Positions 28,801-62,544 of a stretch of DNA of 64,000 bases are shown here, in pieces. The stretch comes from Mobula birostris. Lineage: Eukaryota. The notes beneath the pieces are model-generated. The model did no database searches, was not told the origin of the DNA, and was given only the letters and a program-made list of their open reading frames with translations. A program made the translations under genes and the position numbers. Each line of letters opens with the position of its first letter. Positions within the stretch are counted from its first letter, which is position 1. The stretch is from assembly GCF_030028105.1 (NCBI RefSeq), contig NC_092374.1, positions 174,926,057 to 174,990,056 on the forward strand. The letters run 5' to 3'.

Positions 28801-31800
28801 AGTTTGTGTGGATGCTGTGTGATTTACTGCCCCGCAATAGCCCGTTGGCATGAAATAACAGATTGCACTCTCCACACAATTATAAGGAAATATATTTATG
28901 AATGTTAACTTAACCAAAGAGTTAGTAAAGAAAAGAAAGAAAAAAAATCAAAAAGGGCCCATTATAGTTAAACAGTCACATGTTTGCAGTTTGGAGCTGA
29001 AACCTCCCAAAAGCCAAATTCACTGCTCGTTGGTAAACCTCCGTGCCTTTGCTCCATCGAATTGCGTTTTTCCACCACATCAACTCCTATGATTGGTTCT
29101 CTCCAGTGTCGCCCCTCTTCATCTCCAGCCGAACAAAGACAAAGACCTACACCGCTGTCAGTCACAAAGACCTTTCTTCCAGCCTTCCCTCGAACTTTCT
29201 CCCCATTCCGCCATCCTGACTAGATGACCACCTTCCTAAGCATCCCTTATCTTGTGCTTTTACAGAGAGACCATTACATGAAATGCCCTACAGCATTAGC
29301 AGTAAAACCTTCACTAGGGTGTTTTAGGGCTATTCCTCCACCTTTACAATCTTGCTAATCTTTCCTAAGTAAAGTATATCATTTAATACTATATTCATCA
29401 CTGTCCTTTGAGGTCAGCCAGGTTTCAGTTATTATCTCACACTTATTCATATAATTCCAGCTCATTTATTTCATTATTAGTACAGTGATATGCAAAAGTT
29501 TGGGCACCCTGGTCAAAATTTCTGTTACTGTGAATAGCATTTCTTCGGCAGTTTGAATGGGGCACAGCCGCGCAAGCATGTGAAAGTCGGCCCGTGAGAC
29601 AGCGGGAGAGTTTAAAAGTGAACAGATTGAGAAGGGGAAGGTCGTTTCTTCAGCAGTTTGAATGGGGCATGACTGCGCAAGCGCGTGAAAGTCGGCCCGT
29701 GAGACAGTGGGAGAGTTTAAAAAACAAGCAGATTAACAGAGCGGGCATCATAGGAGCGGGCGACAGAGTAGTGGGAGACAGAGTAGGAAGGCTTTGGCTC
29801 GAGAGTCTTCGGCAAGCAGAGGCTGAGGATGAGCTTGCTCCCAGTGAGGTAAGGCCAAGTAAGTTCCTTTAATGACTCTAATTAACCTAGGAGTAGGTAA
29901 TGGATGCAGCAGTTAGGGCAGTCGAGTGCTCTGTTTGCAGTATGTGGGAAGCCAGGGCGAGCACAATTGTTCCTGATGACTACACCTGTAAAGGTGCATC
30001 CAGCTGCAGCTCCTGACAAACCAAGTTAGGGAACTGGAGCTGGAACTGGATGAACTTCGGATCATTCAGGAGGCAGAGGCAGAAATAAACAGGTGTTTCA
30101 GGGAGATAGTCATCCCTAAAAGTCAGGAGGCAGGTAGCTGGGTGACTATCAGGAGAGGGAAGGGGAATAAACAGAATGAGCAGAGCACCCCTGTGGCCGT
30201 TCCCATCAACAATAAGTATATTGTTTTGGATATTGTTGGTGGGGACGACCTACCAGGGACAAGTTGCAGTGGTTGGGTCTCTGGCACCGAGACTGGACCC
30301 TCAGCTCAGATGGGAAGGAGGGAAAAGAGGAGAGCAGTAGTGATAGGGGATTCGATAGTTAAGGGGACAGATAAGAGGTTCTGTGGGAGAGGTCGAGAAT
30401 CCCGGATGGTCTGTTGCCTCCCTGGTGCCAGGGTCTGCGATATTTCAGATCGAGTTCTCGGTATTCTCAAGAGGGAGGGTGACCAGCCAGATGTCGTGGT
30501 CCACGTAGGGACCAGTGAAGTGGATAGGAAGGAGGAGGAGGTCCTGCAAAGAGAGTTCAGGGAGTTAGGTGCAAAGCTGAAGGACAGGACCTCCAGGGTT
30601 GCAATCTCAGGATTGCTACCCGTGCCACGTGCTAGTGAGGCTAGAAATAGGAAGATAATGCAGCTAAATACGTGGCTAAGGAGTTGGTGCAGGAGGGAGG
30701 GTCTCATGTTTCTGGACAATTGAGCCTTGTTCCAGGGAAAGTGGAACCTGTTCTGACGGGACGGGTTACACCTGAACTGGAAGGAGACTGACATCCTTGT
30801 GGGAAAGTTTGCTAGTGCTGCTCCGGGGGGGGGGGGGTTTAAACTAGATTTGCAGGGGGAGGGGAACCACAGTGTTAGAGCAGATAGTGAGGTGGAGGAG
30901 GATAAAGGTCATGCGAGAACTACAAGTATAGTGCATGGAGTAAAGCCAGATCGAACATATAAAGAGGCTTTGAGGAAAGAGAAACAGAATAAGGGGTGTA
31001 AAGGTAGTAAGGTAGAAGGGCTAAGGTGTGTGTACTTCAATGCAAGAAGCATCAGGAACAAAGGTGGTGAACTGAGAGCTTGGATACATACATGGAATTA
31101 TGATGTAGTGGCCATTACAGAGACTTGGCTGGCACCAGGGCAGGAATGGATTCTCAATATTCCTGGATTTCAGTGGTTTAAAAGGGATAGAGAGGGTGGA
31201 AAAAGGGGAGGAGGGGTGGCATTACTGGGCAGGGATACTATTACAGCTAAAGAAAGGGTGGATAATGTAGCAGAATCCTCTTTTGAGTCAGTATGGGTAG
31301 AAGTCAGGAACAGGAAGGGAGCAGTTACTCTATTGGGTATATTCTATAGGCCCCCTGGTAGCAGCAGAGATACAGAGGAGCAGATTGGGAGGCAGATTTT
31401 GGAAAGGTGCAAAAATAACAGGGCTGTTATCATGGGTGACTTTAACTTCCTCTATATTGATTGGCACCTAATTGGTTCCGATGATTTAGACGGAGTAGAG
31501 TTTGTTAAGTGTGTCCAGGATGGATTCCTGTCACAGTATGTTGACAGGCTGACTGGGGGAGTGCCATACTAGATCTAGTATTAGGTAACGAACCGGGTCA
31601 GGTCACAGATCTCTCAGTGGGTGAGCGTCTGGGGGACAGTGACCACCGCTCCCTGGTCTTTAACATTATCATGGAAAAGGATAGAATCAGAGAGGACAGG
31701 AAAACCTTTAATTGGGGAAGGGAAAATTACAAGGATATAAGGCTAGAACTTGCAGGTATAAATTGGGATAATGTTTTTGCAGGGAAATGTACTGTGGACA

Positions 31801-34800
31801 TGTGGTCGATGTTTAGGGATCTCTTGCAGGATGTTAGGGATAAATTTGTCCCGGTGAGGAAGATAAAGAATGGTAGGGTGAAAGAACAATGGATGACAAG
31901 TGAGGTGGAGAATCTAGTCAGGTGGAAGAAGGTAGCATTCATGAGGTTTAGGAAGCAAGGATCAGATGGGTCTATTGAGAAATATAGAGTAGCAAGAAAG
32001 GAGCTTAAGAAGGGGCTGAGAAGAGCAAGAAGGGGGCATGAGAAGGCCTTGGCGAGTAGGGTAAAGGAAAACCCCACGGCATTCTTCAATTATGTGAAGA
32101 ACAAAAGGATGACAGGAGTGAAGATAGGACCGATTAGAGATAAAGGTGGGAAGATGTGCCTGCAGGCTGTGGAAGTGAGTGAGGTCCTCAATGAATACTT
32201 CTCTTCGGTATTCACCAATGAGAGGGAACTTGGTGACGGTGAGGACAATATGAGGGAGGTTGATGTTCTGGAGCATGTTGATATTAAGGGAGAAGAGGTG
32301 TTGGAGTTGTTAAAATACATTAGGACAGATAAGTCCCCGGGGCCTGATGGAATATTCCTCAGGCTGCTCCACAAGGCGAGGGAAGAGATTGCTGAGCCTC
32401 TGGCTAGGATCTTTATGTTCTCGTTGTCTACGGGAATGGTACTGGAGGATTGGAGGGAGGCGAATGTTGTCCCCTTGTTCAAAAAAGGTAGTAGGGATAG
32501 TCCAGGTAGTTATAGACCATTGAGCTGTACGTCTGTGGTGGGAAAGCTGTTGGAAAAGATTCTTAGAGATAGGATCTCTGGGCATTTAGAGAATCATGGT
32601 CTGATTAGGGACAGTCAGCATGGCTTTGTGAAGGGCAGATCATGTCTAACAAGCCTGACAGAGTTCGTTGAGGAGGTAACCAGGCATATCAATGACGGTA
32701 GTGCAGTGGATGTGATCTACATAGATTTTAGTAAGGTATTTGACAAGGTTCCACATGGTAGGCTTATTCAGAAAGTCAGAAGGCATGGGATCCAGGGAAG
32801 TTTGGCCAGGTGCATTCAGAATTGGCTTGCCTGCAGAAGGCAGAGGGTGGTGGTGGAGGGAGTACATTCAAATTGGAGGGTTGTGACTAGTGGTGTCCCA
32901 CAAGGATCGGTTCTGGGACGTCTCCTTTTCGTGATTTTTATTAACGACCTGGATGTGGGGGTAGAAGGGTAGGTTGGCAAGTTTGCAGATGGCACAAAGG
33001 TTGGTGTTGTAGATAGTGTAGAGGATTGTCAAAGATTGCAGAGAGACATTGATAGGATGCAGAAGTGGGCTGAGAAGTGGCAGATGGAGTTCAACCTGGA
33101 GAAGTGTGAGGTGGTACACTTTGGAAAGACAAACTCCAAGGCAGAGTATAAAGTAAATGGCAGGATACTTGGTAGTGTGGAGGAGCAGAGGGATCTGGGG
33201 GTACATGTCCATAGATCCCTGAAAGTTGCCTCACAGGTAGATAGGGTAGTGAAGAAAGCTTATGGGATGTTAGCTTTCATAAGTCGAGGGAAAAAGTTTA
33301 AGAGTCGCGGGGTAATGATGCAACTCTGTAAAACTCTGGTTAGGCCACACTTGGAGTACTGTGTCCAGTTCTGGTCGCCTCACTATAGGAAGGATGTGGA
33401 AGCATTGGAAAGGGTACAGAGGAGATTTATTAGGATGTTGCCTGGTTTAGAGAGTATGCATTATGATCAGAGATTAAGTGAGCTAGGGCTTTACCTTTGG
33501 AGAGAAGGAGGATGAGAGGAGACATGATAAAGTATACAAGATATTAAGAAGAATAGATAGAGTGGACAGCCAGTGCCTCTTCCCCAGGGCACCACTGCTC
33601 AATACAAGAGGACATGGCTTTAAGGTAAGGGGTGGGAAGTTCAAGGAGGATATTAGAGGAAGGTTTTTTACTCAGAGAGTGGTTCGTGCGTGGAATGCAC
33701 TGCCTGAGTCAGTGGTGGAGGCAGATACACTAATGAAATTTAAGAGACTACTAGACAGGTATATGAACGAATTTAAGGTGGGGGGTTATATGGGAGGCAG
33801 GGTTTGAGGGTCAGCACAACATTGTGGGCCAAAGGGCCTATACTGTGCTGTACTGTTCTATGTTCTATGTAAGTGAGTAGAAAATGAACTGATCTCCAAA
33901 AGTCATAAAGTTAAAGATGAAACATTCTTTTCAACATTTTCAGCAAGGTTTGTGTATTATTTTTGTTTTGTACAATTTTAGAGTGAAATAAAGGAAAGGA
34001 GCACCACGCAAAAGTTTGGGCACCGCAAGAGATTTGAGCTCTCAGATAACTCTTGCCAAGTCCTCCGACCTTAATTACCTTGTTAGGGCTATGACTTAAT
34101 CACAGTCATCATTAAGAAAGGCCAGGTGATGAATATTTCAAAGCTTTGTAAATACCCTGACTCTTCAGACCTTGTCCCAACAATCAGCAGCCATGGGCTC
34201 CTCTAAGCAGCTGCCTAGCACTCTGAAAATTAAAATAAATGATGCCCACAAAGCAGGAGAAGGCTATAAGAAGATAGAAAAGTGTTTTCAGGTAGCTGTT
34301 TCCTCAGTTCATAATGTAATTAAGAAATGGCAGTTAACAGGAACGGTGGAGGTCAAGTTGAGGTCTGGAAGACCAAGAAAACTTTCCAAGAGAACTATTC
34401 GTAGGATTCCTAGAATGGCAAATGAAAACCCCCGTTTGACTGCAAAAGACCTTCAGGAAGATTTAGCAGACTCTGGAGTGGTGGTGCACTGTTCTACCGT
34501 GCAGCGACACTTGCACAAATATGACCTTCATGAAAGAGTTATCAGAAGAAAACTTTTCCTGTGTCCTCACCACAGAATTCAGCGTCAGAAGTTTGCAAAG
34601 GAACATCTAAATGAGCCTAATGCATTTTGGAAACAAGTCCTGTGGACTGATGAAGTTAAAATAGAACTTTTTGGTTGCAATGAGAAAAGGTATGTTTGGA
34701 GAAAAAAGGGTGCAGAATTTCATGAAAAGAACACCTCTCCAACTGTTAAGCACGGGGGTGGATCGATCATGCTTTGGGCTTGTGTTGCAGCCAGTGGCAC

Positions 34801-37800
34801 AGGGAACATTTCACTGGTAGAGGGAAGAATTAATTCAAATAAATACCAGCAAATTCTGGAAGCAAACATCACACCGTCTGTAAAAAAGCTGAAGATGAAA
34901 AGAGGATGGCTTCTACAACAGGATAATGATCCTAAACACACCTCAAAATCCACAATGGACTACCTGAAGAGGCGCAAGCTGAAGGTTTTGCCATGGACCT
35001 CACAGTCCCCTGACCTAAACATCATTGAGAATCTGTGGATAGACCTCAAAAGAGCAGTGCATGTGAGACGGCCCAAGAATCTCACAGAACTAGAAACCTT
35101 TTTCAAGGAAGAATGGGCGAAAATCCCCCAAACAAGAATTGAAAGACTCTTAGCTGGCTACAAAAGCATTTACAAGCTGTGATACTTGCCAAAGGGGGTG
35201 TTACTAAGTACTGACCATGCAATGTGCCCAAACTTTTGCTTCGGGCCCTTTTCCCTTTTTGTTATTTTGAAACTGTAAAAGATGGAAATAAAAAAGTAAT
35301 CTTGCTTGAAATATTAAAGAAATGTGTCATCTTTAACTTCATGCCTTTTGGAAATCAGGTCATCTTTTACTCGCTTAGCTATTCACAGTAAAATAAATTT
35401 TGACTGGGGTGCCCAAACTTTTGCATGCCACTGTACTTATTGCATTTATACAGGCCATCCTTCGTCCATTACCTGATATTTTTCATTCAATTCTGACCCA
35501 TGTTTATATTTTTGAAGCCTATAATCAGCTTATGCCCTGATATGTGATTCTCCACTGAAGTGTTTAAACAGTTGAGCCTGGCCTGTCTGGAGTCCCCTGT
35601 CCGCACCACCCCCAACCCATTCCCTAGTTTAACCAGTCCTCAACTAACTGAAGCATGCGTCTGCCCCGTACTCTCGTGGCCCTTCACTACAAGTGCAACC
35701 TGTCCCAGTGGTGCAGGTTCCATTTTCCTCAAAAGATGCCCCAATGTCCCATGAACCTATGGTCCTCTAACCTACACCATGATTTGAGCCACATGTTAAA
35801 TCATCTAATCTCCTCCATCTTAGCTGGACTGGTGTGTGGCACAGCAGAACTTTTGAGAAGACCACCTGGTCAGTTCTGTCCATGAGCATCCCACCTAACT
35901 CTTTAAATTTGTCTCACAGAACTGACAGCCGGCCCTTACCTGTGTCATTTGTTCTGGTGTGGACAATGACGACTGGATCCATCCCAGCTCCGGCCAGCCG
36001 CATATCAACTCATCCAGGGAGGTCTCCTACTTGTGCTTCTGGTACAGGACCCCTTGTCAGTACACACCTGATTCTCAACAACACCCACCCCCCAATAACT
36101 GAGTCTCTACTACCACTACTTTCATTTTACAGGGTTTAGGTTTAGGGTTAGAGACAGTCTGTCCTGCTTACCACCTCAGAGGTTCCATGGTTGTCGTGGA
36201 GCATCACTAGATGTTCAAAATGGTTGGACACTTCCGAGTCTGGAGTTGATGCTCCTGGACACCGTGCATTCTTACTCTGAACTTCCTTCCCACGGTCACC
36301 CACCCGTCTCGTTCTTTCTGGTCTGGAGTCTCAACCCATGGCTCTCTTCAGGTGCACACTATCTCCCTAAAGGACATCTGGAGCACGTCTGCCAATTCTC
36401 TACAACATCACAGGTCAGCTACCTCCTCCTCAAGTTCAATCAGTGTGTTCCAGAGTTGTTGAATTAACTGATGTTTCTTACATGTGAACTCTCCAGGGGA
36501 GTAATTTTCCATGAATCCGAACATAAGACAAGACTGACATTGCAGAGGCTGCATTCTTATTCTTTTAGGGGAAAGAAATAATGAAGATTAAGTGATTATA
36601 TTTATTGATAGTCTTAAAAGTAAGCTACTATTTATACTACTATTCCTACTTTGTTCCCGATGTACAGATAGTGCCTAACACTTAATGTGTACTTGGACCT
36701 TCTTTGGACTTTCTAGATTTGCATTCCCTGATAATTTCACTTTCTCCACCAGTAAGATACACCACAAAGTGACTCCTGGTCCCACCTTGTTAGGCCTACA
36801 ACAACTTCACCACTATCTAACTACTGGCTCGCTTTTTCATCAAAAGCACGCTAAGCGCCTCTATTACTGTTAGTGCTAGCGAACTGCTTATGCAAAAGTG
36901 AATAAAGAGTTTGGCATATTTTCCTTCATTGGTCATGTTACTGAGTACAAGAGTTGAGATGTCATGTATAAGACATTGATGAGAATACATTTGGAAATAT
37001 TGTTTAGCCACCCAGCTATAGGAAGGATACAATTAACCTAGAAATGGTGCAGACAAGATTCACATACAGTTACCAGAACTGGAGGACTTGAGTTACAAGG
37101 AGTGATTGGAGAGGTTGTGACTATTTTCCATGGAGTGAAGGAGAGAGAGGGGTGACTTTATGGATGTTTATAAAATCATGTGGGGCAAAGATAAAGTGGA
37201 TGGTCACAGTCTTTCTCCGAGGGTTGGAGGACGTACGTAGGTAAAGATGAGGAGGGAAAGATATAAAGGGGACCTGAGGCTGTTGAGTATATGGAATGAG
37301 CTGCTTGGGAAAGTGGTAGAAGAGGATATAGTTACAATGTTTAAAAGATGCTTTGGCAGGTACATGTCACAGGCTAGTAGGATATGGGCCTAACACGGGC
37401 AAAAGGATTAGCTCAGGGAGGAACCTTTGCCGTCATGGTTGAATTGAGCCATATGGATGTGTTTCAGCGCTATATGAATCTATGATTTCCCAACTTCTGT
37501 ATTCTGTGCCCTGACCGTTGAGGACTGGAATAGCATATGCCTTCTACACCACCTTGCTACTTTCAAGGAACTATGGATTTGAGCCTCAAATTGACATTTT
37601 CCAATTCCCTACCATTTATTGTATGTGTCCTACCCCGTACCCTTACACGATGGAATTAACTTCCATCATTCAACACACTGCACAACTTTCTATCACATCT
37701 ACAGTGTATCCTACTGCAGCCTTAGACAAACTTCTCCATAACCACACCACCAACTTTCATGTCATCTGCAAAGTTACTTATGAAATCTCTTCAATTTGCA

Positions 37801-40800: not shown

Positions 40801-43800
40801 TCTGTCGACTGAGCAACGTCCTGACCATCAATGGAGAGTGTGTCGGACAGTTAGATCCTGTCTCTGCTTTGAACGTGGTTTTCCAGAGACAGCGGCACAA
40901 GGGACAGAGTTCACCCTCTTGTGGGAGATGTAATGCCCCACCTTCTGGACATCCTGTCAGTAACCCCAGGAGCACCTCCCTGTACCCAGGAGTCACTGTG
41001 GGTCAGAGGTGAAGTGAGAAGCACTCTACAGGAGCTGGAAGAGTGCTGCTACTGGTGGGGAACTTGGTGCAAGTTCTCAGCTGCTCTCTCCACTGACAGC
41101 AGGGAGAAACTAAACCAGGCAGGGAGCACAGACTATTGCAGACCGTGACTGGAAGTGTTCCCACCTGTACTGAGCACCTCCCCATCCACCCAGAGACACT
41201 TACCCTGACCTCAGAGAGACACACTGATGATTTAACCCTGTCTGGTCCTGGTGAACGTGTCCTGTTCCATAATCCCGCTCCATCGCTCGGTCCGGGACAC
41301 CACAGCTCCTTCGGGGAACTGCGGACGTGATCAGGGATTTCACCCCCACTATCTTCAGGTGGGGCTCCCATGCCTCGGGATGAGGAGTCAGTCCTGGTTC
41401 ACCGGGTTTGGGATCCTGATTCTCTCAGAGGGGTGGGGTTGGACCCCAGTGTATCAGGGTGCTGGTTTCAGAAATGGCTCCCCCTTGGAACCTGGACTCC
41501 CAACCACTCTGACTCTCTGCTCCAATTCCAGGCTCTCTCTCTCTCCGTTATTTCACCATGGCGGTGACCCCAGGGTCAGGGGTCCCTGAGTTTATGGTGC
41601 TTGGGTACATGGACGAGGAGCAGATCGTTTACTACGACAGTGTGTTGAGATGGACGGTTCCCCGTCAGCAGTGGATGGCGGAGAATCAGGGACCTGACTA
41701 CTGGCAACGGGAGACACAACTCTTTCGGGGCAATGAGCAGGTTTCCAAGGCCAACATCCGGACCGTGATGAGCCAGACCAACCAGACAGGGGGTGAGTGG
41801 TGAACAATGCTGGGGGAAGCAGTGGCTGCAGGGTCTGCACGGGTGTGGGGGTTAGGGAGTGACGGAAAGACCACTCGGGTGAGGGGCTTGTGGGGATTTT
41901 ACAGGGGTGGGAATGGTGGGGTGATGGTCGGGACTGTGCAGGGGTTGGGGGAGGGGGTGACAGCAGGGACTTTGGGGGTGGGGGTGACTATAGGGACCTG
42001 CAGAAGTGAGGACCTAGGGGATGATGGTAGGGCCTGTGTGGAGGTGGTCAAGGAGTGACGGAAAGGAATGTGAGTGAGGGCGGATGAGGGGTGATGGTGG
42101 GGACTGGGTGGGGGTGGGGGAAGGGTGTTACAGTGGGTGCTCAGTGCGGGTGGGGGAGTGATGGTAGGGATTGTGTGGGGGTGATGGTAGGGGCCAGGGA
42201 TGTGGTGGTGGATGATGATGTAGGGGTGGGGGGAAGGGCTGTGTGTGGGTGGGGAAGGGGTGATGGGTGGGACCGTACGGGGGTGGGGTGGGGAGTGATG
42301 ATGGGAACTGTGCAGGAGTGGGAGTCCCAGGATGATAGTAGGGACCAAGCAATAGGAGGGTGGTGGTGGAGACCGTACTGGGGGTGGGGTGTGAGTCACC
42401 GCTGACACCATGTGGGGGTAGGGAGGGAGGTGACGGTCGGAGCAGTGTGGAGGCGGGGATGGGTAACATTAGGGATGGGGGGAGGGGGTTACTTGTGACC
42501 ATGGTTTGGGGAGGTAATGGTAAGAATCCTGGTGTGGTAAGATTGTCATGGAGGGGATCGTGTGAGGGTGGCGGGTCTGGTGTGTACGGACTGTCTGATG
42601 TGTGGTAGAGGTGACAGTAGGGACTGTCTGATAGGTGTAGGTGAAGGAGCAACGGTGGGGACCATGTGGGGGTGACAGTAGGGACTGTGTGGGCGTGAGG
42701 GTAGGGTCCATGCAATATTTCTTCAGCAGTTCGATCAGGGTACGACTGCGCAAGTGTGTGGACATCAGCCAGTGAGAGCAGCGAGGAGGGTTTAAAAGAG
42801 AGAAGGCTTTACAGAGCGGGTGACAGAGTAGAGGGAGACAGAGTAGGAAGGCCTTGGCTCAATGGGGCTTTGGTGACAACGGGTCGAGGCGAGGTAAGCT
42901 GCCTGCGTAGAATTAGAGACCAGAAGTATGTGTCTGAGGCCGTTGGTCTGTGCTGGATGTCAGACATGGGAAGTCCTGGAGACTCCCAGCCTCCCAGATG
43001 GCCACATCTGCACCAGGTGCGTCGAGCTGCAGCTCCTTAGAGACCATGTTAGGGAACTGGAGATGCAGCTCGATGACCTTCGTCTGGTCAGGCAGAGTGA
43101 GGAGGTGATAGATGGGAGCTATAGGCAAGTAGTCACACCGGGGCCACGGGAGACAGACAATTGGGTAACAGTCAGGAGGGGGAAGGGCAAGGGTCCAAGA
43201 CTAGAGCGTACCCCAATGGTTGTCACCTTAACAATAAGTACTCCTGTTTGAGTACTGTGGGAGGAGACAGCCTACCTGGGGGAAGCAACAGTGGCCACGC
43301 CTCTGGCACAGAGTCCAGCCCTGTGGCTCAGAGGGGAGGGAAAGGAAGAGGATGGCAGCAGTGATAGGGGACTCTATAGTTAGGGGTCAGACAGGTGATT
43401 CTGTGGACGCAGGAAAGAAACATGGATGGTCGTTTGCCTCCCAGGTGCCAGGGTCCGGGATGTTTCTGATTGTGTCCACAATATCCTGAAGTGGTAAGGA
43501 GAACAGTCAGAGGTCGTGGTACATATTGGTACCAACGACGGAGGTAGGAAAAGGCAGGAGGTCCTGAAAACAGACTACAGGGAGTTAGGAAGGAAGTTGA
43601 GAAGCAGAACCTCTCAGTAATCTCGGGATTACTACCTGTGCCATGCGACAGTGAGTATAGGAATAGAGGGAAGTGGAGGATAAATATGTGGCTAAGGGAT
43701 TGGAGCAGGGGGCAAGGATTCAGATTTTGGATCATAGGGACCTCTTTTGGGGCAGACGTGACCTGTACAAAAAGGATGGGTTGCACTTGAATCCCGAGGT

Positions 43801-46800
43801 ACCAATATCCTGGCGGGGAGGTTTGCTAAGGCTACTGGGGAGAGTTTAAACTAGGATTGTTGGGGGGTTGGGAACCGAACTGAAGAGAAGGTGGAAGAGG
43901 CGGTTGGCTCACAAATAGAGAAAGCTTGTAGACAGTGCGAGAAGGAGGGCAGGCAGGTGATAGAGAAGGGATGTGCTCAGATCGTTGTTTGAGATGTGTC
44001 TATTTTAATGCAAGGAGTATTATTAACAAAGTGGATGAGCTTAGAGCATGGATCTGTACTTGGAATTATGATGTTGTGGCCATTACAGAGACTTGGATGG
44101 CTCAGGGGCAGGAATGGTTACTTCAAGTGCCAGGCTTTAGATGTTTCAGAAAGGACAGGGAGGGAGGCAAAAGAGGTGGGAGCGTGGCACTGTTGATCAG
44201 AGATAGTGTCACGGCTACAGAAAAGGAGGAAGTCATGGAGGGATTGTCTACAGAGTGTCTATGCGTGGAAGTTATGAACAGAAAGGAGTCAATAACTCTA
44301 ATAGGTGTATTTTATAGACCACCCAACGGTAACAGGGACATGGAGGAGCAGATAGGGAGACAGATTCTGGAAAGGTGTAATAATAACAGGGTTGTCGTGA
44401 TGGGTGATTTTAATTTCCCAAATATTGATTGGCATCTCCCTAGAGCAAGGGCTTTAGATGGGGTGGAGTTTGCTAGGAGCCCTGGCCTCATCCGATTCTT
44501 GTTCTCTCCCTCTCCTTGCCACTTCCCAACAACGTTTGGTGTCATCTCTTGACTATAACATACCCCTTCCCTTTCCACGTGGCATAATTAGGCTGACCAT
44601 TTTTTTTTACCCTAATGCTAGATAGAAGATACGAAGCAGTAACACCAAAGGATGCTGATTATTCTTGATGATGTGGTTGGCACTCTCCTAAATGGACGTG
44701 ATATAGTCATTACTGTCCTTTGACTGCAGCAAGGGGTTTTATGGGTGTCTCGAAGTACGTCATTACAATAAGATTTAATTATCTATTATTGATGGGTGGC
44801 AGTTAGATCTGTCCCAATCCTGCACATGCTGATGGTGGTTAGCAGAATGTGACCCCTTGAAATAGAGCTGCCCTGCCCTTTTGCTCCAGTAGATGTCGCT
44901 GCTGAGGCTGGCCATGCACATGCATCGGGCTGTCATGTCCCAATTTCCATGAAGGCGGATCGGCTCGGGAGTTAAAAGGGAGCCTGTTGATTTTTGTGAA
45001 TGAGCAATTTTATATGAATATATAACCTTGAACTTTGCCTGCATTCTGTAAGTTAGCGCATTTTAATTCGATTTAGCCAAAAAAAGTGCTGCTGTAATAC
45101 ACCGTTTGCGCTTATTGGAGGTCACAAACAGACAGACAGAGCATGAGAGTTTTAGCAGTACAGTATATACATAAGGTTAGTGGGAAGGACCTTAAGAAGG
45201 AAATTAGGAGAGCCAGAAGGGGCCATGAGAAGCACTTGGCGGACAGGATTAAGGAGAACCCCAAGGCATTCTACAAGTATGTGAAGAGCAAGAGGATAAG
45301 ACATGAGAGAATAGGACCAATCAAGTGTGGCAGTGGAAAAGTATGTATGGAACCGGAGGAGATAGCAGAGGTACTTAATGAATACTTTGCTTCAGTATTC
45401 ACCACGGAGAAGGATCTTGGCTCTTGTAGGGATGACTTGCAGTGGACTGAAAAGCTTGAGCATGTAGATATTAAGAAAGAGGATGTGCTGGAGCTTTTGG
45501 AAAGCATCAAGTTGGATAAGTCGCCGGGACCGGATGAGATGTACCTCAGGCTACTGTGTGAGGTGAGGGAGGAGATTGCTGAGCCTCTGGCAATATATTT
45601 GCCTCATCGTTGGGGCCGGGAGAGGTACCAGAGGATTGGAAGATTGCGGATGTTGGTCCCTTATTCAAGAAAGGGAGTAGAGATAGCCCAGGAAATTATA
45701 GACCAATGAGTCTTATCTCAATGGTTGGCAAGTTGATGGAAAAGATCCTGAGAGGCAGGATTTATGAACATTTGGAGATGTATAATATGGTTAAGAATAG
45801 TCAGCATGGCTTTGTCAAGGGCAGGTTGTGCCTTACAAGCCTGATTGAATTTTTTGAGGATGTGACTAAGCACATTGATGAAGGAAGAGCAGTAGATGTA
45901 GGGTATATGGATCTCAGCAAGGCATTTGATAAGGTACCCCATGCAAGGCTTATTGAGAAGGTAAGGAGGCATGGGATCCAAGGGGACATTGCTTTGTGGA
46001 TCCAGAACTGGCTTGCCCACAGAAGGCAAAGAGGGGTTGTAGACAGGTCATATTCTACATGGAGGCCGGTGACCAGTGGTGTGCCTCAGGGTTCTGTTCT
46101 GGGACCCTTACTCTTCGTGATTTTTATAAATGACCTGGATGAGGAAGTGGAGGGTTGGGTTAGTAAATTTGCTGATAACACAAAGGTTGGAGGTGTTGTG
46201 GATAGTGTGGAGGGCTGTCAGAGGTTACAGCGGGACATTGATAGGATGCAAAACTGGGCTGAAAAATGGCAGATGGATTTCAACCCAGATAAATGTGATG
46301 TGGTTCATTTTGTTAGGTCGAATATGCTGGCAGAATATAGTATTAATGGTAAGACTCTTGGAGTGTGGAGGATCAGAGGGATCTTGGGATCCGAGTCCAT
46401 AGGATGCTCAAAGCAGCTGCACAGGTTGACTCTGTGGTTAAGAAGGCATACGGTGCATTGGCCTTCGTCAACCGTAGGACTGAGTTTAGCAGCCGAGAGG
46501 TAATGTTGCAGCTATTTCGGACCCTGGGCAGACCCCACTTGGAGTACTGTGCTCAGTTCAGGATAGATGTGGAAACCATAGAAAGGGTGCAGAGGAGATT
46601 TACAAGGATGTTGCCTGGATTGGGGAGCATGCCTTATGAGAATAGGCTGAGTGAACTCGGCATTTTCTCTTTAGAGCAACGGAGGATGAGAGGTGACCTG
46701 ATAGAGGTGTATAAGATGATGAGAGGCATTGATCGTGTGGATAGTCAGAGGCTTTTTCCCAGGGCTGAAATGGCTAGCACGAGAGGGCACAGTTTTAAGG

Positions 46801-49800
46801 TGCTTGGAAATAGGTATAGAGGAGATGTCAGGGGTAAGTTTCTTATGCAGAGAGTGGTGAGTACGTGGAATGGGCTGCCAGTGACAGTAGTGGAGGCGGA
46901 AACGATAGGCTCATTTAAGAGACTTCTGGATAGGTATATGGAGCTTAGAAAAGTAGAGGGCTATGGGCAACCGTAGGTAATTTCTTAGATAAGGACATGC
47001 TCGGTACAGCTTTGTGGGCCGAAGGGCCTGTATTGGGCTGTAGGTTTTCCATGTTTCTATGTTTCTATGACATGTGTCAGGGTGACAGTAGGTATTGTGT
47101 GACGGTGGCAGTAGGGACTGTGTGACCGTGATGGTAGAGACCGTTGGATGGGTGGGGGAGGTGATGGGGTAAGGGTGTAAAGCTGTGCACCATTGGGATG
47201 TGGTGTTGTTGGGTGTGATGGTGGGGACTGTGAAAGTAATGGTGGGGAATGTTCAATGGGTGGGGAGAAACGGTGGGGAATGTTCAATGGGTCGGGGGTG
47301 ACGGTGGGGAACGTTCGATGGGTGGGGGTGACTGTGGGGAATGTTCGATGGGTGGGGGTGATGGTGGGGAATATTCGATGGGTGGGGGGGTGACTGTGGG
47401 GAATGTTCGATGGGTGGGGGTGACGGTGGGGAATGTTCGATGGGTGGGGGGTGACAGTGGGGAATGTTCGATGGGTGGGGGGTGACTGTGGGGAATGGGT
47501 GGTGGTGATGGTGGGGAATGTTTGATGGTGGGGGTGATGTTGGGGAATGTTCGATGTGTTGGATTGACTGTGGGGAATGTTCGATGGGTGGTGGTGACGG
47601 TGGGGAATGTTTGATGGGTGGGGTGAGTTTAGGATTGTGTAGTGGTGACTGTGAAGATTTACAGGATGGGGAATTTGTATCCTCTTCCCCCTGACAGACA
47701 GTTTGTTCCAGGGATCCACATTTGGCAGCAGATGTATGGCTGTGAGCTCCATGACGACGGGACCACCACCGGGTTCAATCGGTACGCTTGGGACGGGTCA
47801 GACTTCATCGCCTTCGACAAGGATCGGATGGTGTGGGTGACCCCTGTGCCCTGGGGTCAGATCATCAAGGACAAGTGGGATCGGGACACGGCCATGAACC
47901 AGTATTGGAAGGGATACCTGGAGCAGACCTGCATCGAATGGCTGATGAGATACGTCAAGGCCGGGGGGAGTCACCTGAAACCCAGTGAGTGGGGGGTGTG
48001 GTGGAGAACTGTGTGTCTGGGAGAGCTCCCCCCCCCACCCCATCGCCATCTCCTCGCCCCTCCCTTTACCGTCCCCTCACACTTCCTCTCCACGCTCCCC
48101 ATCTGATCACCCCCTGTCTCCTTGCACCCTCTCCCCTTGGCCTCTGTCTATTCATCCTCATTTCCTCGCCCCAATCTCCTCACCTCATCTCTTCATCCCT
48201 TGCCTCCTCACCTCTGTGCCTTTCTCCCCTGTCTCTTCACCTCCCGTCTCTTCAACCTCAATCTCCTCGCTCCCCATCAGGTTGCCCCCCAGTCTTCTCA
48301 CCCCCGTCTCTGTGTTCCCTCCCCCCTCCCCCCTCGTCCTCTCACCCCCCTCCCTCTCCCACTCCTTGCTCTTTCCTCTCCTCCCTCACCGTCTCCTCTC
48401 CCCAATTGCCCTTTCCTTCTCCCCCTCCCCTCCTCTCCCACTTTCACTGTCACCTCTTCACCCCCTTGCTGACTCCTCACCCCCCGCATGTCTCCTCTTC
48501 CCCGTCGCCCTCTGCTCCGCACCTCCTCCTCTCCCCTTTCACAGTCTCCTCTCTGCCCCCTCACCCTCTCCCCTTCCCTTCTCACTGTCTCCTCTCCCCC
48601 CGTTCTCACTGTCTCCTCTCCCCCCTTGCTGCCTCCTCGCCTGCTCACCTTTCCCCCCGCTGTCTGCTTTCCCCCTTGTCCCTCTGCCCCCTCACTGCTT
48701 CCTCTTCATCCCCTCACCATTTCCCCTCCCGTACTCACCGACCTCCCCTCATCCCTGTCTCCTCTCCCCTCACCCCACCTCATCTCCTCTCCCCCACCGG
48801 CCATCTCCTCTCCCCCTTCTCGCTGTCCCCTCTCTGCCCCTCTCCATTTCCTCTCCCAACTCGCCATCTCCTCTCCACCTTGCCTTTAACCTCTTCCCCC
48901 CTCACGGTTTCCCTTCCTCTCTTCCTGTTTCCTCTCCCCCTCATCATTTCCTCTCCCCCCCTTGCTGTCTCCTCCCCTGCTGATTCCCCATCCCCACTTG
49001 CCATTTCCTCTCTCCCTTGCCGTTACCTCCCCCTTGCATTGCCTCTCCCCCTTTGCCCTCCCCTATAACCCCCTTCACCATCTCCTCTTCCTCCCTTGCT
49101 GCCCCCACTCACTGCTTTCTCTCCCACCCCAGATCCCCCCGAAGTCTTGTTCACCGCCTCGAAGGAAAATGGCCACCACCTCTCCTGTGTGGCCACCGGC
49201 TTCTACCCTCAGTCCATCGATGTGACTATTCTGCGGGACGGCCGGATCCTGGAGGAGACCCATTCCCACGGGATCCTCCCCAATCACGACAACACCTACC
49301 AGCTGACCAGGACGGTGCGGGTGGAGCCCACGGACACAGCAAAGTTCTCCTGTCGGGTGGAACACCGGGGTCTCCCCGAGCCCTTCCCGCCCTTCCTGGG
49401 TAAGAGACACTCACTGGTGGGGTGGTACACGGGCAGTGAGAGGGAGGGGGCTTGGCTGACCACAGACCCAGGGCTGGGAGCTGTGATGGTGAGGGGTCAC
49501 TGTTGACCTCTGGTCCAAGAGCACAGTGAGGGGTCACTGTTGACCACAGGCCCAGGAGAGGACAGAGGGAGGAATCAATGATTCTCAGACAGGATGGTTG
49601 GTGGGATGGGAGGGTGTGGGTGGGGTTGGTGAAGGAGAATCGGGGTTAACACTGTCTCTGTCACTGATGTGACTGTTTCTCTGAATCACCAATAGATCCG
49701 AAGCCCAACTCCATCCCAATCTTGGTCATCGCTATAGTTGTGGTCCTGGTGATCCTGGTGATGGTCATCGCTGTTGGTGTTGCCTACAAAAAGAAAGGTA

Positions 49801-51355
49801 GGACAGAAGGGAGTTGGACTGTTCCCCTGGGGAAGGGGGCTTGGGAAGGGTGTATTCCTCAGCGAACCCCATCCCAGTACCCTTGCGTTTCTACACCCAA
49901 GGGTGCCCACATCCAACCCCACCATTCCCCGTCACTTTCCCTTCTCTCAGTATGACAGTATCCATGTTGTCTCTACCACTCACTGCCTCTAAGTGCAGGG
50001 TCATGGAGCAGAAAACAGTATAGCACAGTACCAGCCTCTGGCCCACAAAGTTGCGCTGCCCTCTTAAACTACTCCACTGTCAATCTAACCGTTCCCTCCC
50101 ACAAACCCTCCATTTTTCTTTCATTCATGAGCCTCTTAGATGTCCTTAATGTGTCAGCCTCGACCACCACCCCGAGCAGTGTTCCACACACCCCTCTGAC
50201 ATCCCCGCCCCTGTACTTCCCTTCAATCACCTTACAGGGATGTTCTTTGGTATTAGGCATTGCTTCCCTGGTTAAAAAAAGGTTGGCTGTCCACATTATC
50301 TAAGCCTCTTAACATCTCATCGATAAATGGAAACTTTGTTTTCTACTTTCCCCAGTGCATGAGTCATCGAGTCAGACTGTCTGGAATTAGATCCTTCGGC
50401 CTGACATGCCATTAATGATCACATGTACCTGTATACTCTGATCCCATTTTCTCGCCCTCTCTGACTTACCTGCCTCAGTCTATCTTCAATGATATGAGAG
50501 TCTGCCTTCACTGTTACTTCAGACAGTGTGTTCGATTCCAGCCACCCTCTGGGTTTGGGTGAAACATTCCTTCCTCCGGTCACTCCCAGTGATCTTGCTC
50601 CTCACTGACAGATTCTGATCTTGGACTCCTCTGTTCTGGGAAATCAGTTCCTCCTACCTGCCCCACCTGAGCCTCTCATTACTGTGTGCATCCATACCTG
50701 GTGAACCTGACCAGGGTCAGGGTCAGTATTAGGGTAAATGGTCACTCCAAACCTCCCACTGACCACTCTGTCACACACCAGCTTTGTTCCGTCTCATGGC
50801 CTTACAATGAGTTCGGGCACCTGGTGATCCTGTTGAATGTGTCTCCTTTCACAGCTTGTACCTTGAGTTCTGTTTGATTGGGATTCAGAGCTCACTGGGC
50901 AGGAGATGAATCTATCTGGTTACATGCTGGGGATGTGAGACCCTTCTCATTGACTGTCTCTGTGTTTTACAGCAGGCTGTTTTTCATCAGGGAACAAAGG
51001 CTACAATCCCACCAAAAGTAAGTTCACTGTAAATCACAGCTGGATGGTTGTGTGACATTGTTCATGTTCACTGGGTCTCATCAACAGAACAGGAGTTCAG
51101 TGTTTGTGTGTCATTGTGTGTCACCCTTGTGAGTGTCTCTGTCAGTGTTTGTATGACACCTTTGTGCATGTCTCTGTCGGTGTGTGTGATTATCCGTATA
51201 TACCTGTGTTTGTGCAGTGGTGTATTGTGTGCATGTGGCTGTCTTTGTTTCTCCGTGTCTGCACTGCATTGGTAGTAAATGTTTTCCTGCCTGTCCTTCC
51301 ATTCACAGCTTCTGACAAAGGAGAATCCTCCTCCAACTCCTCTGCCATGGCCTGA
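10846..51355 (+). CDS. MHC class I heavy chain gene, 7 coding exons, 348 aa, reading frame intact (lineage not assigned; nonclassical-like groove)
   Basis: Exons of 52+261+273+267+102+45+47 nt = 1047 nt. All introns are GT-AG and phase 1. Domains: leader, alpha1, alpha2 (C101/C164), Ig-C1 alpha3, TM, and tail ending [21 protein letters not shown]. Confidence 0.92.
11170..13796 (+). mobile_element. CR1 LINE pieces (3' end fragment followed by an APE-RT remnant)
   Basis: Degenerate [24 protein letters not shown]...[14 protein letters not shown]; terminus ggcctatttctgatcctatatcttatgg. Confidence 0.85.
14791..15921 (-). mobile_element. 5' fragment of an LTR element (LTR about 15515-15921, putative PBS, short internal sequence)
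   Basis: Termini tgttag...ctctaca (TG...CA); on the - strand a TATATAAA (15640-15647), then AATAAA (15569-15574), then tggcaacaagatggga resembling a tRNA-Ser(GCU) PBS; interrupts the LINE above. Confidence 0.5.
17200..19364 (+). mobile_element. CR1 LINE (5'-truncated, internally deleted) nested in the antisense LINE
   Basis: APE remnants, [39 protein letters not shown]; tail ggcctaattctgctcctatatcttatgatctt. Confidence 0.85.
19721..20423 (-). repeat. 3' LTR of the Gypsy element
   Basis: Homologous to 28651-29323; outer end cagggtgttaca at 20423. Confidence 0.85.
24853..24888 (-). ncRNA. Minimal hammerhead motif in the left pLTR (cleavage-site region mutated)
   Basis: The - strand reads cgtc-CTGACGA-a-gggtctcggccc-GAAA-catt-gact. 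Confidence 0.55.
27209..27244 (+). ncRNA. Minimal type I hammerhead ribozyme motif with intact core, sense to the MHC pre-mRNA
   Basis: agtc-CTGACGA-agg gtctcgg cct-GAAAC-GTC-gact: stem I agtc/gact, stem II, palindromic ACGT stem III, GUC cleavage triplet at 27238-27240. Confidence 0.75.
28633..28650 (-). other. tRNA-Pro primer-binding site of the Gypsy element
   Basis: The - strand reads tgggggatcgtccgggat, 17/18 to the tRNA-Pro PBS TGGGGGCTCGTCCGGGAT, directly inside the 5' LTR. Confidence 0.85.
28651..29323 (-). repeat. 5' LTR of the Gypsy element
   Basis: Homologous to 19721-20423 and adjacent to the PBS. Confidence 0.85.
29539..33869 (+). mobile_element. Near full-length CR1 LINE (ORF1 zinc finger + SGNH esterase; ORF2 APE-RT) with stops and frameshifts
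   Basis: ORF1 [11 protein letters not shown]...VHVGTSE; ORF2 [29 protein letters not shown]; (tgttcta)n tail. Confidence 0.93.
34193..35182 (+). CDS. Tc1 transposase, DD34E, near intact (1-bp deletion alters the last about 16 aa)
   Basis: Paired-like HTH GEGYKKI...[17 protein letters not shown]; [17 protein letters not shown] with 34 residues between the second D and E; the shifted frame after 35163 reads [14 protein letters not shown]. Confidence 0.88.
   Translation: MGSSKQLPSTLKIKINDAHKAGEGYKKIEKCFQVAVSSVHNVIKKWQLTGTVEVKLRSGRPRKLSKRTIRRIPRMANENPRLTAKDLQEDLADSGVVVHCSTVQRHLHKYDLHERVIRRKLFLCPHHRIQRQKFAKEHLNEPNAFWKQVLWTDEVKIELFGCNEKRYVWRKKGAEFHEKNTSPTVKHGGGSIMLWACVAASGTGNISLVEGRINSNKYQQILEANITPSVKKLKMKRGWLLQQDNDPKHTSKSTMDYLKRRKLKVLPWTSQSPDLNIIENLWIDLKRAVHVRRPKNLTELETFFKEEWAKIPQTRIERLLAGYKSIYKL
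38400..38560 (+). mobile_element. tRNA-derived V-SINE
   Basis: A box gtagtgtagtggttagc, B box gagttcaatcct, then the V-domain-like tgtaaggagtttgtac...tgctccggtttcttcctacagtccaaaga. Confidence 0.75.
39745..39948 (-). mobile_element. tRNA-derived SINE
   Basis: The - strand reads tggtgtagtggcatcagca (A box) ... gagttcgaatcc (B box). Confidence 0.55.
41532..41792 (+). CDS. MHC class I exon 2 (alpha1)
   Basis: ttccag|gc ... ggg g|gtgagt; [37 protein letters not shown]...[11 protein letters not shown]...SQTNQTG, with the N86 glycosylation site NQT. Confidence 0.97.
41800..42715 (+). repeat. G/T-rich low-complexity tract at the start of intron 2
   Basis: Many GGGG(T)G runs and gtgatggt/ggactgtg motifs. 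Confidence 0.8.
42717..47069 (+). mobile_element. CR1 LINE (ORF1 + ORF2) in intron 2, with an unrelated insert at about 44478-45170
   Basis: 5'UTR resembles that of the CR1 at 29539; esterase VIGDSIV; [14 protein letters not shown]; [13 protein letters not shown]; (atgtttct)n tail. Confidence 0.92.
47240..47626 (+). repeat. G-rich minisatellite, about 30-bp unit, about 12 copies
   Basis: Unit ggtggggg(g)tga(c/t)(g/t)gtggggaatgttcgatg; ends about 85 bp before the exon 3 acceptor. Confidence 0.92.
47712..47984 (+). CDS. MHC class I exon 3 (alpha2)
   Basis: ttccag|gg ... ccc a|gtgagt; [13 protein letters not shown]...[12 protein letters not shown]...[15 protein letters not shown]...[15 protein letters not shown]. 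Confidence 0.97.
48020..49130 (+). repeat. Polypyrimidine (C/T-rich) tract filling intron 3
   Basis: About 1.1 kb dominated by cc/ct runs with few purines on the + strand. Confidence 0.9.
49133..49399 (+). CDS. MHC class I exon 4 (alpha3, Ig C1)
   Basis: ccccag|at ... ctg g|gtaaga; [16 protein letters not shown]...[10 protein letters not shown]...[13 protein letters not shown]. Confidence 0.97.
49696..49797 (+). CDS. MHC class I exon 5 (connecting peptide + transmembrane)
   Basis: caatag|at ... aaa g|gtagga; [34 protein letters not shown]. Confidence 0.93.
50973..51017 (+). CDS. MHC class I exon 6 (cytoplasmic; alternative in-frame starts at 50976 and 50991)
   Basis: ttttacag|cag|gctg...aaaa|gtaagt; [15 protein letters not shown], containing the tail tyrosine typical of class I exon 6. 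Confidence 0.85.
51309..51355 (+). CDS. MHC class I exon 7 (cytoplasmic, stop)
   Basis: ttcacag|ct; [15 protein letters not shown]; TGA at 51353-51355 followed by g|gtagga. Confidence 0.88.
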
Positions 51356-60400: not shown

Positions 60401-62544
60401 CTGCTCCAGATCCCTAACACGGTCTTCCAGAAGCTGCAGCCGGATGCTCTTCACACAGATGTAGTTCCCAGGGAGACTCTGGGCCTCCCAGGACTCCAGC
60501 ATCCAGCATGAAGAATATATAACAGCCGTTTACTACACCAGGTACAGTAAGAGAAACCAAAAGGGAACTTTAACAAAATCTAACCCGGAGCCAAAATCTC
60601 TTTTGAGCCAAAGCCTCATTTAAACCAAAGCTTGACATTCCTACTCTCACCGCTGGCCTACTCCCGATGATGGTCGCCCGGCTTGTCCCTTCTGTACTTT
60701 TAAACAAGCATCACTGACCTGTGAGAAATCTCGTCGCTGTGGCCTGTTCCTGCTGCTGATTGGGCTACTTGTTTAACTTACCTTTAAAAAATATATTTAC
60801 TGTAATTTAGTGATTATTATTATGTTGCTGTCGCAGAACAACAAATTTCACGACAGTGGTATTAAACCAGACTGATATTTATTGTTTATTTATTTAGTAT
60901 TTTCTCAACCTGTGTTCCTTTGCACATTCGTTGTTAGTCTGTCTTGTTGATGCAGTCTTTCATTGATTCTATTGTGTTTTTTAGATTCACTGTGAATCCC
61001 GGCAAGTAAATGAATCTCGGGGTTGTATTTGATAATACATTTATTTTGAACTTTTTTTGACTAGCACTGTGCAATACAGAAAAACAATGATAAATTACGT
61101 TAAGAAATATTCCTCACTCATCTCACAAGTTGTCCTATTTCTAATTATGGGGTTCCTTCACTCAGCCTGTTTCTGTTCCATATTATCAAAGCTTCTTCAG
61201 TCCAGTATTATTCTCCCTTCAATATTACTCTGATCCCCTGTTTCTGCTTCCGGAACAGTGTGTGTGTGGTGGGATTGACATGTGCCCGAGGGTCAGGTTT
61301 GTCACATTACCTGGCAGTCTTACACCACTCCTCCATGGATCCAACGTTATCCATAGCTTCTCCTGTGGCTGTGACTGAATTGCCTTTCCTCCTGTATTTT
61401 CACACCAGGTGGAATGTATAACTGTTGTGGGTTCTACATCTGTTCCATAATGTTAGCCCCTGTCTCTCTGCTCTCAGGCCTTGTAACCAAGTCTTCCCAC
61501 CTTTTATACACACCAGACTCCTCACACCTTCATGATTTTCTTCGTTTACTTTGGGGCCAGAGTTTCTGATCAAAGTGTACAATATCCCGACTCTGCAGGA
61601 CAGTGACACGGTCTATGACCACTATGTCTGTCCTAATCATTAATGACCAATCCACATTATTCCCATTCACTGACACCTAGTCCATAACCTTCTCTGTCTT
61701 GGTTATTCAAGTGCTTCTCAAGGTATTTCTTAAACATTGTGAGTCTGTCTCTCCACCATCCCCCAAGTAGTGTGTTCCAGGCTCCAAACCCTCACCCTCC
61801 GTGTGAACATTCTTCCTCAGATCCCCTCTAAACCTCTCCACCATTTCCTGAACCCCATCTCTCTAGTTTCAGACAAGTTTGCCATGGGCAGGTTTCAAAT
61901 ATGGACGACCCTGTCTTTGCCTGTAATGATTTTGTACCTCTATCATGTCTCCCCTCAGCATCCTCCATTCCAAGGGAAGGGATCTATCCATTCTCTCCTT
62001 CATAACCACACTGCTCCATCACAAACACCACCATGATGGATCTCTGCACCCCGTCCAGTGCGATCTCATCCTTTTCCCCTCCTTGGGGACCACAGATACT
62101 GATGGTATTTCTGAAAATCCCCATGTTTCAGGGTACTTACTGAGAGGGATGGGCCACCTCATCCTGAATCTGGGTCATTCCATAAGAAAGGAACAGAATT
62201 AGGCCATTCGGCCCATCGTCTGTCTGCTCTGCCACTTCATCATGACTGATCCATTTCCCTTTCAGCCCAATCTCCAATCGAACCTCCTCTGTACCCTCTC
62301 CAATGTCAGCACATCTCTCTCAGATAAGGGCCCAAACTGCTCACAATACTCCAGGTAAGACCAGCCCAGTGCCCTATAAAGCCTCAGCATTACATCCTTC
62401 CTTTTATATTCTAGTCCTCTCAAAATAAATGTTCACATTGCATTTGCCTTCCTCACCACCCACCTAACCTGCAAATTAACCTTTAGGGATCCCCGCACGA
62501 GGACTCTCGAGTCCCCTTGCACCTTAGAGTTTTGTCCTCGAGTG

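Follow-up and report, generated by a model that had tools for sequence, protein, structure and literature searches.

The 64 kb stretch of Mobula birostris DNA analysed here (the window) carries one complete MHC class I gene in seven coding exons on the plus strand (10846-51355), whose exons join into a 1047-nt spliced coding sequence with a translation 100% identical to the M. birostris RefSeq protein XP_072115033.1 (P0153). The gene is already annotated in RefSeq, and the annotated span of 40,510 bp fits these coordinates. Exon 1 (10846-10897), lying within the 100% match to P0153, provides the start codon and a 17-residue signal peptide and ends in a phase-1 gtgagt donor. The two groove domains follow after a long intron: exon 2 (41532-41792) encodes alpha1, with Y7, Y59, N77, T80, Q84 and the N86-Q-T glycosylation site, and exon 3 (47712-47984) encodes alpha2, with W95, C101, Y116, F123, I143, K146, W147, W156, Y159, C164, W167 and Y171. 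Each of these exons is bordered by ag and gt, joins its neighbours in phase 1 and matches Pfam MHC_I (E 2e-21 for exon 2, 7e-24 for exon 3). Downstream, exon 4 (49133-49399) encodes the alpha3 Ig C1-set domain with both of its cysteines (Pfam C1-set E 7e-15), exon 5 (49696-49797) the connecting peptide and transmembrane helix, in agreement with P0153, exon 6 (50973-51017) a 15-residue cytoplasmic segment including a conserved tyrosine (GYNP), and exon 7 (51309-51355) the cytoplasmic end (T plus 14 residues) and the stop codon. The preliminary description had reported an intact class I molecule at 41532-47984; exons 2 and 3 lie exactly there, within a gene that is much larger and likewise intact.

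With MHC_I alpha1 and alpha2 domains, a C1-set domain, a transmembrane helix and a short tail, each domain on an exon of its own and the junctions in phase 1, the gene has the architecture of MHC class I. The cysteines of both disulfides, C101-C164 (YGCEL and EQTCIEW, exon 3) and C203-C259 (LSCVATGF and FSCRVEH, exon 4), are in place, as is the N86 sequon (NQT, exon 2). An AlphaFold2 model of the heavy chain has a mean pLDDT of 89; its best structural match is shark UAA (PDB 6LUP), and next come peptide-binding class I chains of birds and carp along with several MR1 chains. The encoded protein is a membrane-bound MHC class I heavy chain of the beta2-microglobulin type. The sole hint of expression comes from the RefSeq models, which include several isoforms for the ortholog of Mobula hypostoma.

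About 260 bp 5' of the start codon, a putative promoter module of X1, X2-like and Y boxes (CCTGGCAACAGATG, TGACTCC and CTGATTGG) was read by eye at 10516-10590 on the plus strand and may have regulatory function; a TATA-like TTTAAATA lies near 10660, and a simple pattern search found neither ISRE nor kappaB motifs within ~500 bp of the module. The long intronic ORFs are transposable elements. Among them, a decayed LINE in intron 2 (43932-46976, plus strand) retains several ORFs with endonuclease and reverse-transcriptase pieces (Pfam Exo_endo_phos E 2e-13, RVT_1 E 4e-33) and contributes nothing to the class I protein. The Pro/Ser-rich ORFs at 47989-49068 resemble translated simple sequence. 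No second alpha2 or alpha3 exon is present in the 64 kb window.

To place the groove residues, we aligned the protein with HMMER to nurse shark classical Gici-UAA*01 (6LUP) and used HLA numbering. This chain ranks first among the sequence matches of each groove exon (E 2e-25 and 2.5e-36) as well as among the structural matches (55% identity, TM 0.75). Its domains follow the same order as in the window gene, and the two have in common both disulfides, the glycosylation site at N86 and residues Y7, Y59, F123, K146, W147, Y159, W167 and Y171. The retention of these eight residues had been read by eye beforehand and is borne out by the alignment, as is the conserved A pocket, which is complete with all of its tyrosines; N77, T80, Y116 and I124 are present as well. 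The two chains part at four positions noted in the preliminary description. R84 of 6LUP is replaced by Q (MSQTNQTG against SKRTNQTG; codon CAG, 41774-41776) and T143 by I (GQIIKDKW against GEITKNKW; codon ATC, 47864-47866), while W stands at position 95 (47723-47725) in place of Y and at position 156 (47906-47908) in place of T. Thus six of the eight anchors of the peptide termini (Y7, Y59, R/Y84, T143, K146, W147, Y159, Y171) are present, against the eight of a classical molecule.

These substitutions differ in how unusual they are among 229 sampled class I domains. W95 occurs in 34 of the 229 and W156, the commonest residue at its position, in 63, and both are frequent among ordinary shark UAA sequences; although the two tryptophans are real, we therefore rejected them as special features. 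The earlier suggestion of a rebuilt F pocket is also overstated, since K146, W147, N77, T80, Y116, F123 and I124 all remain. The combination at 84 and 143 is rarer. Among the 78 domains that keep the six other anchors, R84/T143 is found in 63 and R/Y84 with T143 in 66, Q84/T143 in four, and Q84/I143 in three, all of them from the Mobula locus of the window gene. Nevertheless, only 66 of the 229 domains hold the full set of eight, so partial anchor loss is common in class I genes of every vertebrate class.

The same residues bear on whether the groove might hold a non-peptide ligand, a lipid or small metabolite, in the manner of CD1/UFA or MR1. Bulky aromatics at 95 and 156, the hydrophobic Ile at 143 and the good scores of the alpha1 exon against MR1 chains would fit such a ligand, but the gene has lost neither K146 and W147 nor any tyrosine of the A pocket, the groove is rich in polar residues (E63, N70, N77, Q97, N114), the tryptophans are of the kind found in ordinary shark UAA, and the best match in both sequence and structure is a peptide-binding shark UAA. 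We consider a non-peptide ligand highly improbable.

Phylogenetic analysis answers the question of lineage that the preliminary description had left open. In a careful maximum-likelihood tree the window gene falls in a batoid UAA-type clade (support 100/100), whereas 6LUP falls in the shark UAA clade, and within the batoid clade it belongs to a stingray-only expansion (99/98). Membership of the shark UBA family was rejected, as the UBA clade (100/99) excludes the gene. The older class Ib lineages (UCA, UDA, UEA, UFA, UGA) are an unlikely home, given the nesting within the UAA-type clade and the 50-55% identity to shark UAA. A second tree of alpha1-alpha2, from which column 84 and one K column were omitted, joins the window gene to its M. 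hypostoma ortholog (100/96), then to Hypanus (98/87) and Hemitrygon (91/84). Q84 is present in all four orthologs; the M. hypostoma protein, ~90% identical, also has I143, W95 and W156, while those of Hypanus and Hemitrygon combine Q84 with T143, so that among orthologs I143 is common to the two Mobula species only. By this distribution, Q84 goes far back among stingrays, and I143 is specific to Mobula. Furthermore, because the M. hypostoma ortholog keeps all four residues, the gene is a distinct locus and not a set of classical alleles. In a 90% identity cluster M. birostris is represented by a single sequence, the other members being isoforms from M. hypostoma, and a second database search with P0153 found no further Mobula alleles or transcript-derived relatives. 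Our literature search on batoid class I turned up no account of the window gene.

Including the window gene, M. birostris has at least five UAA-type genes (P0153, P0159, P0160, P0169/P0274, P0001), and other class I paralogs lie on the chromosome of the window gene (accession series XP_072115027-033, 210 Mb contig). The other Mobula paralogs keep eight anchors, and one pair is far more divergent in the groove: P0160/P0273, with 8/8 anchors, differs at 34 of 175 alpha1-alpha2 positions between the species, compared with 17 of 175 for the window gene. On these sequences the pair makes the better classical candidate, which bears on the possibility that the window gene is itself a functional classical MHC-Ia gene of Mobula whose Q84 and I143 hold the peptide C-terminus in a lineage-specific manner but with full competence. 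Its position in the UAA-type clade, complete A pocket, K146 and W147, cytoplasmic tail of classical type (GYNP tyrosine, 11-residue end), putative X/Y-box promoter, and greater divergence between Mobula species in the helices (11/78) than in the sheets (6/97) would all agree with a classical role. However, the gene has only six of the eight defining anchors, while P0160/P0273 has all of them and about twice the groove divergence. Linkage adds little: a degenerate ABCB/TAP-like Walker-A fragment lies 11 kb downstream of the gene (62527-62784, minus strand) and might be taken for a trace of TAP, but it matches ABCB nucleotide-binding domains weakly (E 0.01) and is without the Walker A lysine, so we gave it no weight in judging linkage, and the 64 kb window is devoid of intact TAP and PSMB genes. 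A classical role is thus quite unlikely. The earlier label of a nonclassical or specialised molecule is the likelier one, because the locus is separate, its orthologs share Q84 and Mobula has paralogs with eight anchors; the status itself we infer from these comparisons.

The rates of change raise a further alternative, namely that the gene is a redundant copy that drifts because constraint is relaxed; Q84 and I143 would then be tolerated as near-neutral transitions without specialised function, and the gene would perhaps be on its way to becoming a pseudogene. The 17/175 differences in alpha1-alpha2 between the Mobula species stand against 5/175 in the conserved P0159 group, and the 11/91 in alpha3 against 4/91. 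Moreover, the alpha3 domain of the window gene differs as much from its M. hypostoma ortholog as from its paralogs (likewise 11/91), which points to fast evolution or mixing by gene conversion and fits relaxed constraint too. Anchors also erode differently in each ortholog: Hemitrygon has Y7 changed to H and W167 to R, Mobula has I143, and no single fixed groove design is therefore conserved at the locus. Arg to Gln needs a single transition, and Q84 turns up again in other duplicated class I genes, namely those of Heterodontus (P0178) and Heptranchias (P0200), one turtle and one lizard. Against drift, M. birostris has all seven exons, the splice sites, four cysteines, the glycosylation site and a tail of classical type in intact form, the ortholog models of M. 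hypostoma, Hemitrygon and Hypanus are full-length, Q84 has been maintained across two stingray families, and the model folds at high confidence. We regard drift as possible but rather unlikely.

We therefore favour, with modest confidence, a nonclassical, 'MHC-Ia-like' stingray paralog derived from UAA that probably still binds peptides and has a weakened C-terminal clamp. Extra 'MHC-Ia-like' genes near the MHC-Ia gene have been mentioned for elasmobranchs as unpublished data, surrounded by zinc-finger genes (Verissimo et al. 2023, PMC10751288). That paper gives neither sequences nor a description of the groove, so the comparison is by description: the window gene agrees in being UAA-like and one of several paralogs per stingray genome, and differs in its surroundings, all reading frames of the 64 kb window being free of C2H2 zinc-finger motifs. 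Shark UBA (Heterodontus AAC60348 / O19480) is likewise a UAA-derived and expanded nonclassical family, and T143I is the rule there (11 of 13 sampled members); UBA members, however, have A/S59, mostly R146, and R84, where the window gene has Y59, K146 and Q84. As the gene also lies outside the UBA clade, its I143 is convergent. A precedent for a nonclassical gene in the UAA-type clade beside the classical gene of the same species is the nurse shark 'non-classical MHC class I antigen' AAL59854 (P0180), which is a shark-specific duplicate with all eight anchors and not an ortholog. The cytoplasmic tail is of the same type as that of Triakis UAA (P0034).

As a duplicate of a classical UAA-type gene within an expansion found only in stingrays (Myliobatiformes), the favoured paralog most likely still binds peptides, with its A pocket complete and most of the C-terminal network (K146, W147, N77, T80) remaining. 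R/Y84, T143 and K146 are class I-specific binders of the peptide main chain (PMC8236899); the C-terminal carboxylate is held by T143, K146 and Y84, and when Y84 and K146 move, the groove opens and the peptide can extend at its C-terminus (PMC10917088). In the favoured paralog this three-point clamp would have been reduced in two steps, Arg84 giving way to the shorter Gln in the common stingray ancestor of the locus and Thr143 to Ile in the Mobula lineage, where its hydrogen bond would no longer be possible. Ile cannot hydrogen-bond, while Gln at 84 can still donate a hydrogen bond; T143I would thus be the only clear loss of contact, and Gln84 may stand in functionally for Arg84, in which case the effect could be small. 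Otherwise, a weaker or more permissive grip on the peptide C-terminus and less need for a free carboxylate would be expected, C-terminal overhang might be tolerated, and the molecule would act alongside paralogs with the full anchor set.

Contacts at 84, 143 and 146 also decide closure of the groove end in HLA-A*02:01 and H-2Kd, where C-terminal extension involves a Tyr84 flip and a Lys146 lift (PMC10917088). In these mammalian molecules the residues are unaltered and change conformation, whereas substitution in the window gene may hard-wire a similar state; by analogy, the open form should become more favourable with a smaller residue at 84 and no T143 bond. A stronger version would have an old, stingray-wide Q84 locus in which the further loss of T143 in Mobula, convergent with shark UBA, leaves the carboxylate clamp reduced to K146, yielding a naturally open-ended groove for long or C-terminally overhanging peptides with perhaps less dependence on TAP and trimming. 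We think this version unlikely.

As it stands, the window gene is probably an ordinary-looking nonclassical paralog, a modest and not a surprising result. Among living animals with an MHC, cartilaginous fish are the oldest group, and the gene bears on the evolutionary question of how class I duplicates depart from the classical role. It offers a dated, two-step example in an otherwise classical-looking molecule, with R84Q common to manta and whiptail stingrays followed by T143I in Mobula, the latter also the rule in the independent UBA family of sharks. Should the altered clamp affect the length of bound peptides or what is required at their C-terminus, the locus would provide a natural test of the roles of residues 84 and 143.

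The two exons singled out in the preliminary description, exon 2 (41532-41792, +; Pfam MHC_I, E 2e-21) and exon 3 (47712-47984, +; Pfam MHC_I, E 7e-24), are real, with ag/gt borders and phase-1 junctions. They belong to a seven-exon MHC class I heavy-chain gene that further comprises a leader exon 30.6 kb upstream of exon 2 (10846-10897, +), an alpha3 exon (49133-49399, +; Pfam C1-set, E 7e-15), a transmembrane exon (49696-49797, +) and two cytoplasmic exons (50973-51017 and 51309-51355, both +); a pattern scan of the whole 64 kb window finds a single alpha2 and a single alpha3 exon. Spliced, the coding sequence is 1047 nt long and its translation is exactly protein P0153, RefSeq XP_072115033.1, titled 'class I histocompatibility antigen, F10 alpha chain-like [Mobula birostris]'. 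The annotated gene also spans the same 40,510 bp (10846-51355); the gene is thus intact and already has an automatic annotation. Upstream of the leader lies a putative X1 / X2-like / Y-box module (10516-10590, +). Its X1 box is a near-identical copy of the RFX site of MHC promoters, and a TGACTCC element and a CTGATTGG Y box come after it; simple patterns picked up neither ISRE nor kappaB motifs near this module.

Transposable elements crowd the introns. Intron 2 carries a decayed LINE; the 30.6 kb length of intron 1 is largely owed to LINE and LTR-type insertions, namely a further LINE that includes an RT frame (29992-33512, +) and, on the strand opposite to the gene, the pol remains of an LTR retrotransposon (RT-RNase H; 21025-26948, -). 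Intron 1 also holds an uninterrupted Tc1/Sleeping-Beauty-type transposase frame of 349 aa (34133-35179, +; HTH_Tnp_Tc3_2, HTH_SB, DDE_3), which may represent a recently active DNA transposon copy. Introns 2 and 3 contain G/T-rich and C/T-rich simple sequence (41807-42800 and 47057-49070), and the Pro/Ser/His-rich open frames there, which reach 359 aa and occur on either strand, were rejected as spurious. Convergent with the gene, an ABCB-type nucleotide-binding-domain fragment surrounds a Walker A site (VGDSAGGG, no lysine) at 62527-62784 (-); it matches ABCB1/ABCB4 at E 0.01 only, and a 'TAP-like' label is therefore not established.

HMMER alignment to 6LUP, the nurse shark classical class I structure (Gici-UAA*01), bears out the residues originally read by eye. 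Relative to 6LUP, the groove shows R84Q (MSQTNQTG vs SKRTNQTG), T143I (GQIIKDKW vs GEITKNKW), Y95W and T156W, and it keeps Y7, Y59, K146, W147, Y159, W167, Y171, F123, N77, T80 and Y116 (HLA numbering). Among 229 sampled and aligned class I alpha1-alpha2 domains, however, W95 occurs in 34 and W156 in 63, tryptophan being the commonest residue at 156; the two tryptophans, although present, are thus ordinary and carry no weight in the argument first built on them. Where the other six peptide-termini anchors are kept (78 of the 229), the 84/143 states are R/T in 63 domains, Y/T in three, Q/T in four and Q/I in three, the last all from the Mobula locus described here. Q84 also appears in class I duplicates of Heterodontus (P0178) and Heptranchias (P0200), one turtle and one lizard, a recurrence that fits an easy single-transition change.

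The C-terminal carboxylate of the peptide is held by T143, K146 and Y84, or R84 outside mammals (PMC10917088; PMC8236899), and the groove opens to C-terminally extended peptides when Y84 rotates and K146 is lifted (PMC10917088). Gln84 is shorter but can still donate a hydrogen bond, which Ile143 cannot. With the whole A pocket present and K146, W147, N77 and T80 still in place, we would expect a peptide binder whose C-terminal clamp is weakened and more permissive, instead of the 'rebuilt F pocket' initially proposed. An AlphaFold2 model (pLDDT 89, pTM 0.73) has standard class I topology and 6LUP as its closest structural match; the ranks below are mostly bird and carp peptide-binding class I chains, and MR1 chains enter from rank 11. 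A non-peptide ligand seems very improbable to us.

In a careful maximum-likelihood tree of 56 sequences, the phylogeny that the preliminary description had proposed, the gene falls within a batoid UAA-type clade (100/100). The stingray group inside it (98/95) splits into a small conserved group of P0159, P0272 and P0161 (100/100) and a stingray-only expansion of 16 sequences (99/98) that includes our gene. A clade around Heterodontus O19480 is separate (100/99); it corresponds to the UBA family described by Bartl et al. (1997; cited in PMC12562908). From this topology we infer a UAA-derived paralog. As such, the gene fits the 'additional MHC-Ia-like genes' mentioned as unpublished by Verissimo et al. 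2023 (PMC10751288), even though the 64 kb window shows no zinc-finger genes around it. Sampled UBA-clade sequences (P0182 and others) keep R84, Y159 and Y171, and I143 is the normal state there (11 of 13). I143 in these sharks is paired with A/S59 and mostly R146, whereas in the Mobula gene it accompanies Y59 and K146, so the Mobula change is convergent.

The order of the two changes can be read from the orthologs. In an alpha1-alpha2 tree built without column 84, the gene pairs with its M. hypostoma counterpart (100/96), and Hypanus P0156 (98/87) and Hemitrygon P0155 (91/84) join in turn. Q84 is present in all four proteins, and the AU test does not reject a single origin of Q84 for every batoid sequence that has it (p-AU 0.33), so Q84 predates the mobulid/dasyatid split; both dasyatid orthologs have T143, so I143 arose on the Mobula branch. 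The M. hypostoma ortholog (P0269/P0270) is full-length, 88-90% identical, and shares Q84, I143, W95 and W156. The Hemitrygon ortholog additionally carries H in place of Y7 and R in place of W167. Relaxed drift is the main rival reading, though an unlikely one.

A genuinely classical role, which descent from UAA might suggest, is less likely still. When M. birostris is compared with M. hypostoma at the amino-acid level, the gene (P0153/P0270; six of eight anchors) differs at 17/175 alpha1-alpha2 and 11/91 alpha3 positions, and the pair P0160/P0273, on small unplaced scaffolds, at 34/175 and 11/91 with all eight anchors; the latter looks like the better classical candidate. While its alpha1-alpha2 is clearly orthologous with P0270, the alpha3 of our gene is equally distant (11/91) from P0270 and from the paralogs P0160 and P0001 (a tandem-cassette gene), which suggests that exon 4 evolves fast, or that paralogs exchange it through gene conversion or concerted evolution. 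Taken as a whole, the reading of a nonclassical or specialised molecule is supported in part, in the form of a UAA-derived nonclassical or 'Ia-like' paralog; the residue observations behind it stand.

Outside the window, class I proteins with at least two alpha1-alpha2-alpha3 cassettes per chain are predicted in several batoid genomes: P0001 (M. birostris, 654 aa), P0151 and P0286 (Hypanus) and P0287 (Pristis). In P0001, both cassettes seen have R84 and T143.

A second stingray UAA-type gene, also outside the window, is represented by P0159 (M. birostris), P0272 (M. hypostoma), P0161 (Hemitrygon) and P0285 (Hypanus). It keeps all eight anchors, lacks the tyrosine-bearing cytoplasmic exon, and has a groove almost frozen across three genera, with 0-1 differences in 36 alpha1-helix positions, even against Hemitrygon and Hypanus, 0-3 in 42 of the alpha2 helix and 7-11/91 in alpha3; P0159 and P0272 differ at 5/175 alpha1-alpha2 and 4/91 alpha3 positions. 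A groove conserved to this degree is reminiscent of MR1 or the teleost Z lineage, and this group may be of greater interest than the gene described here, which itself would offer a loss of C-terminal contacts in two steps that can be dated, Q84 and then I143.
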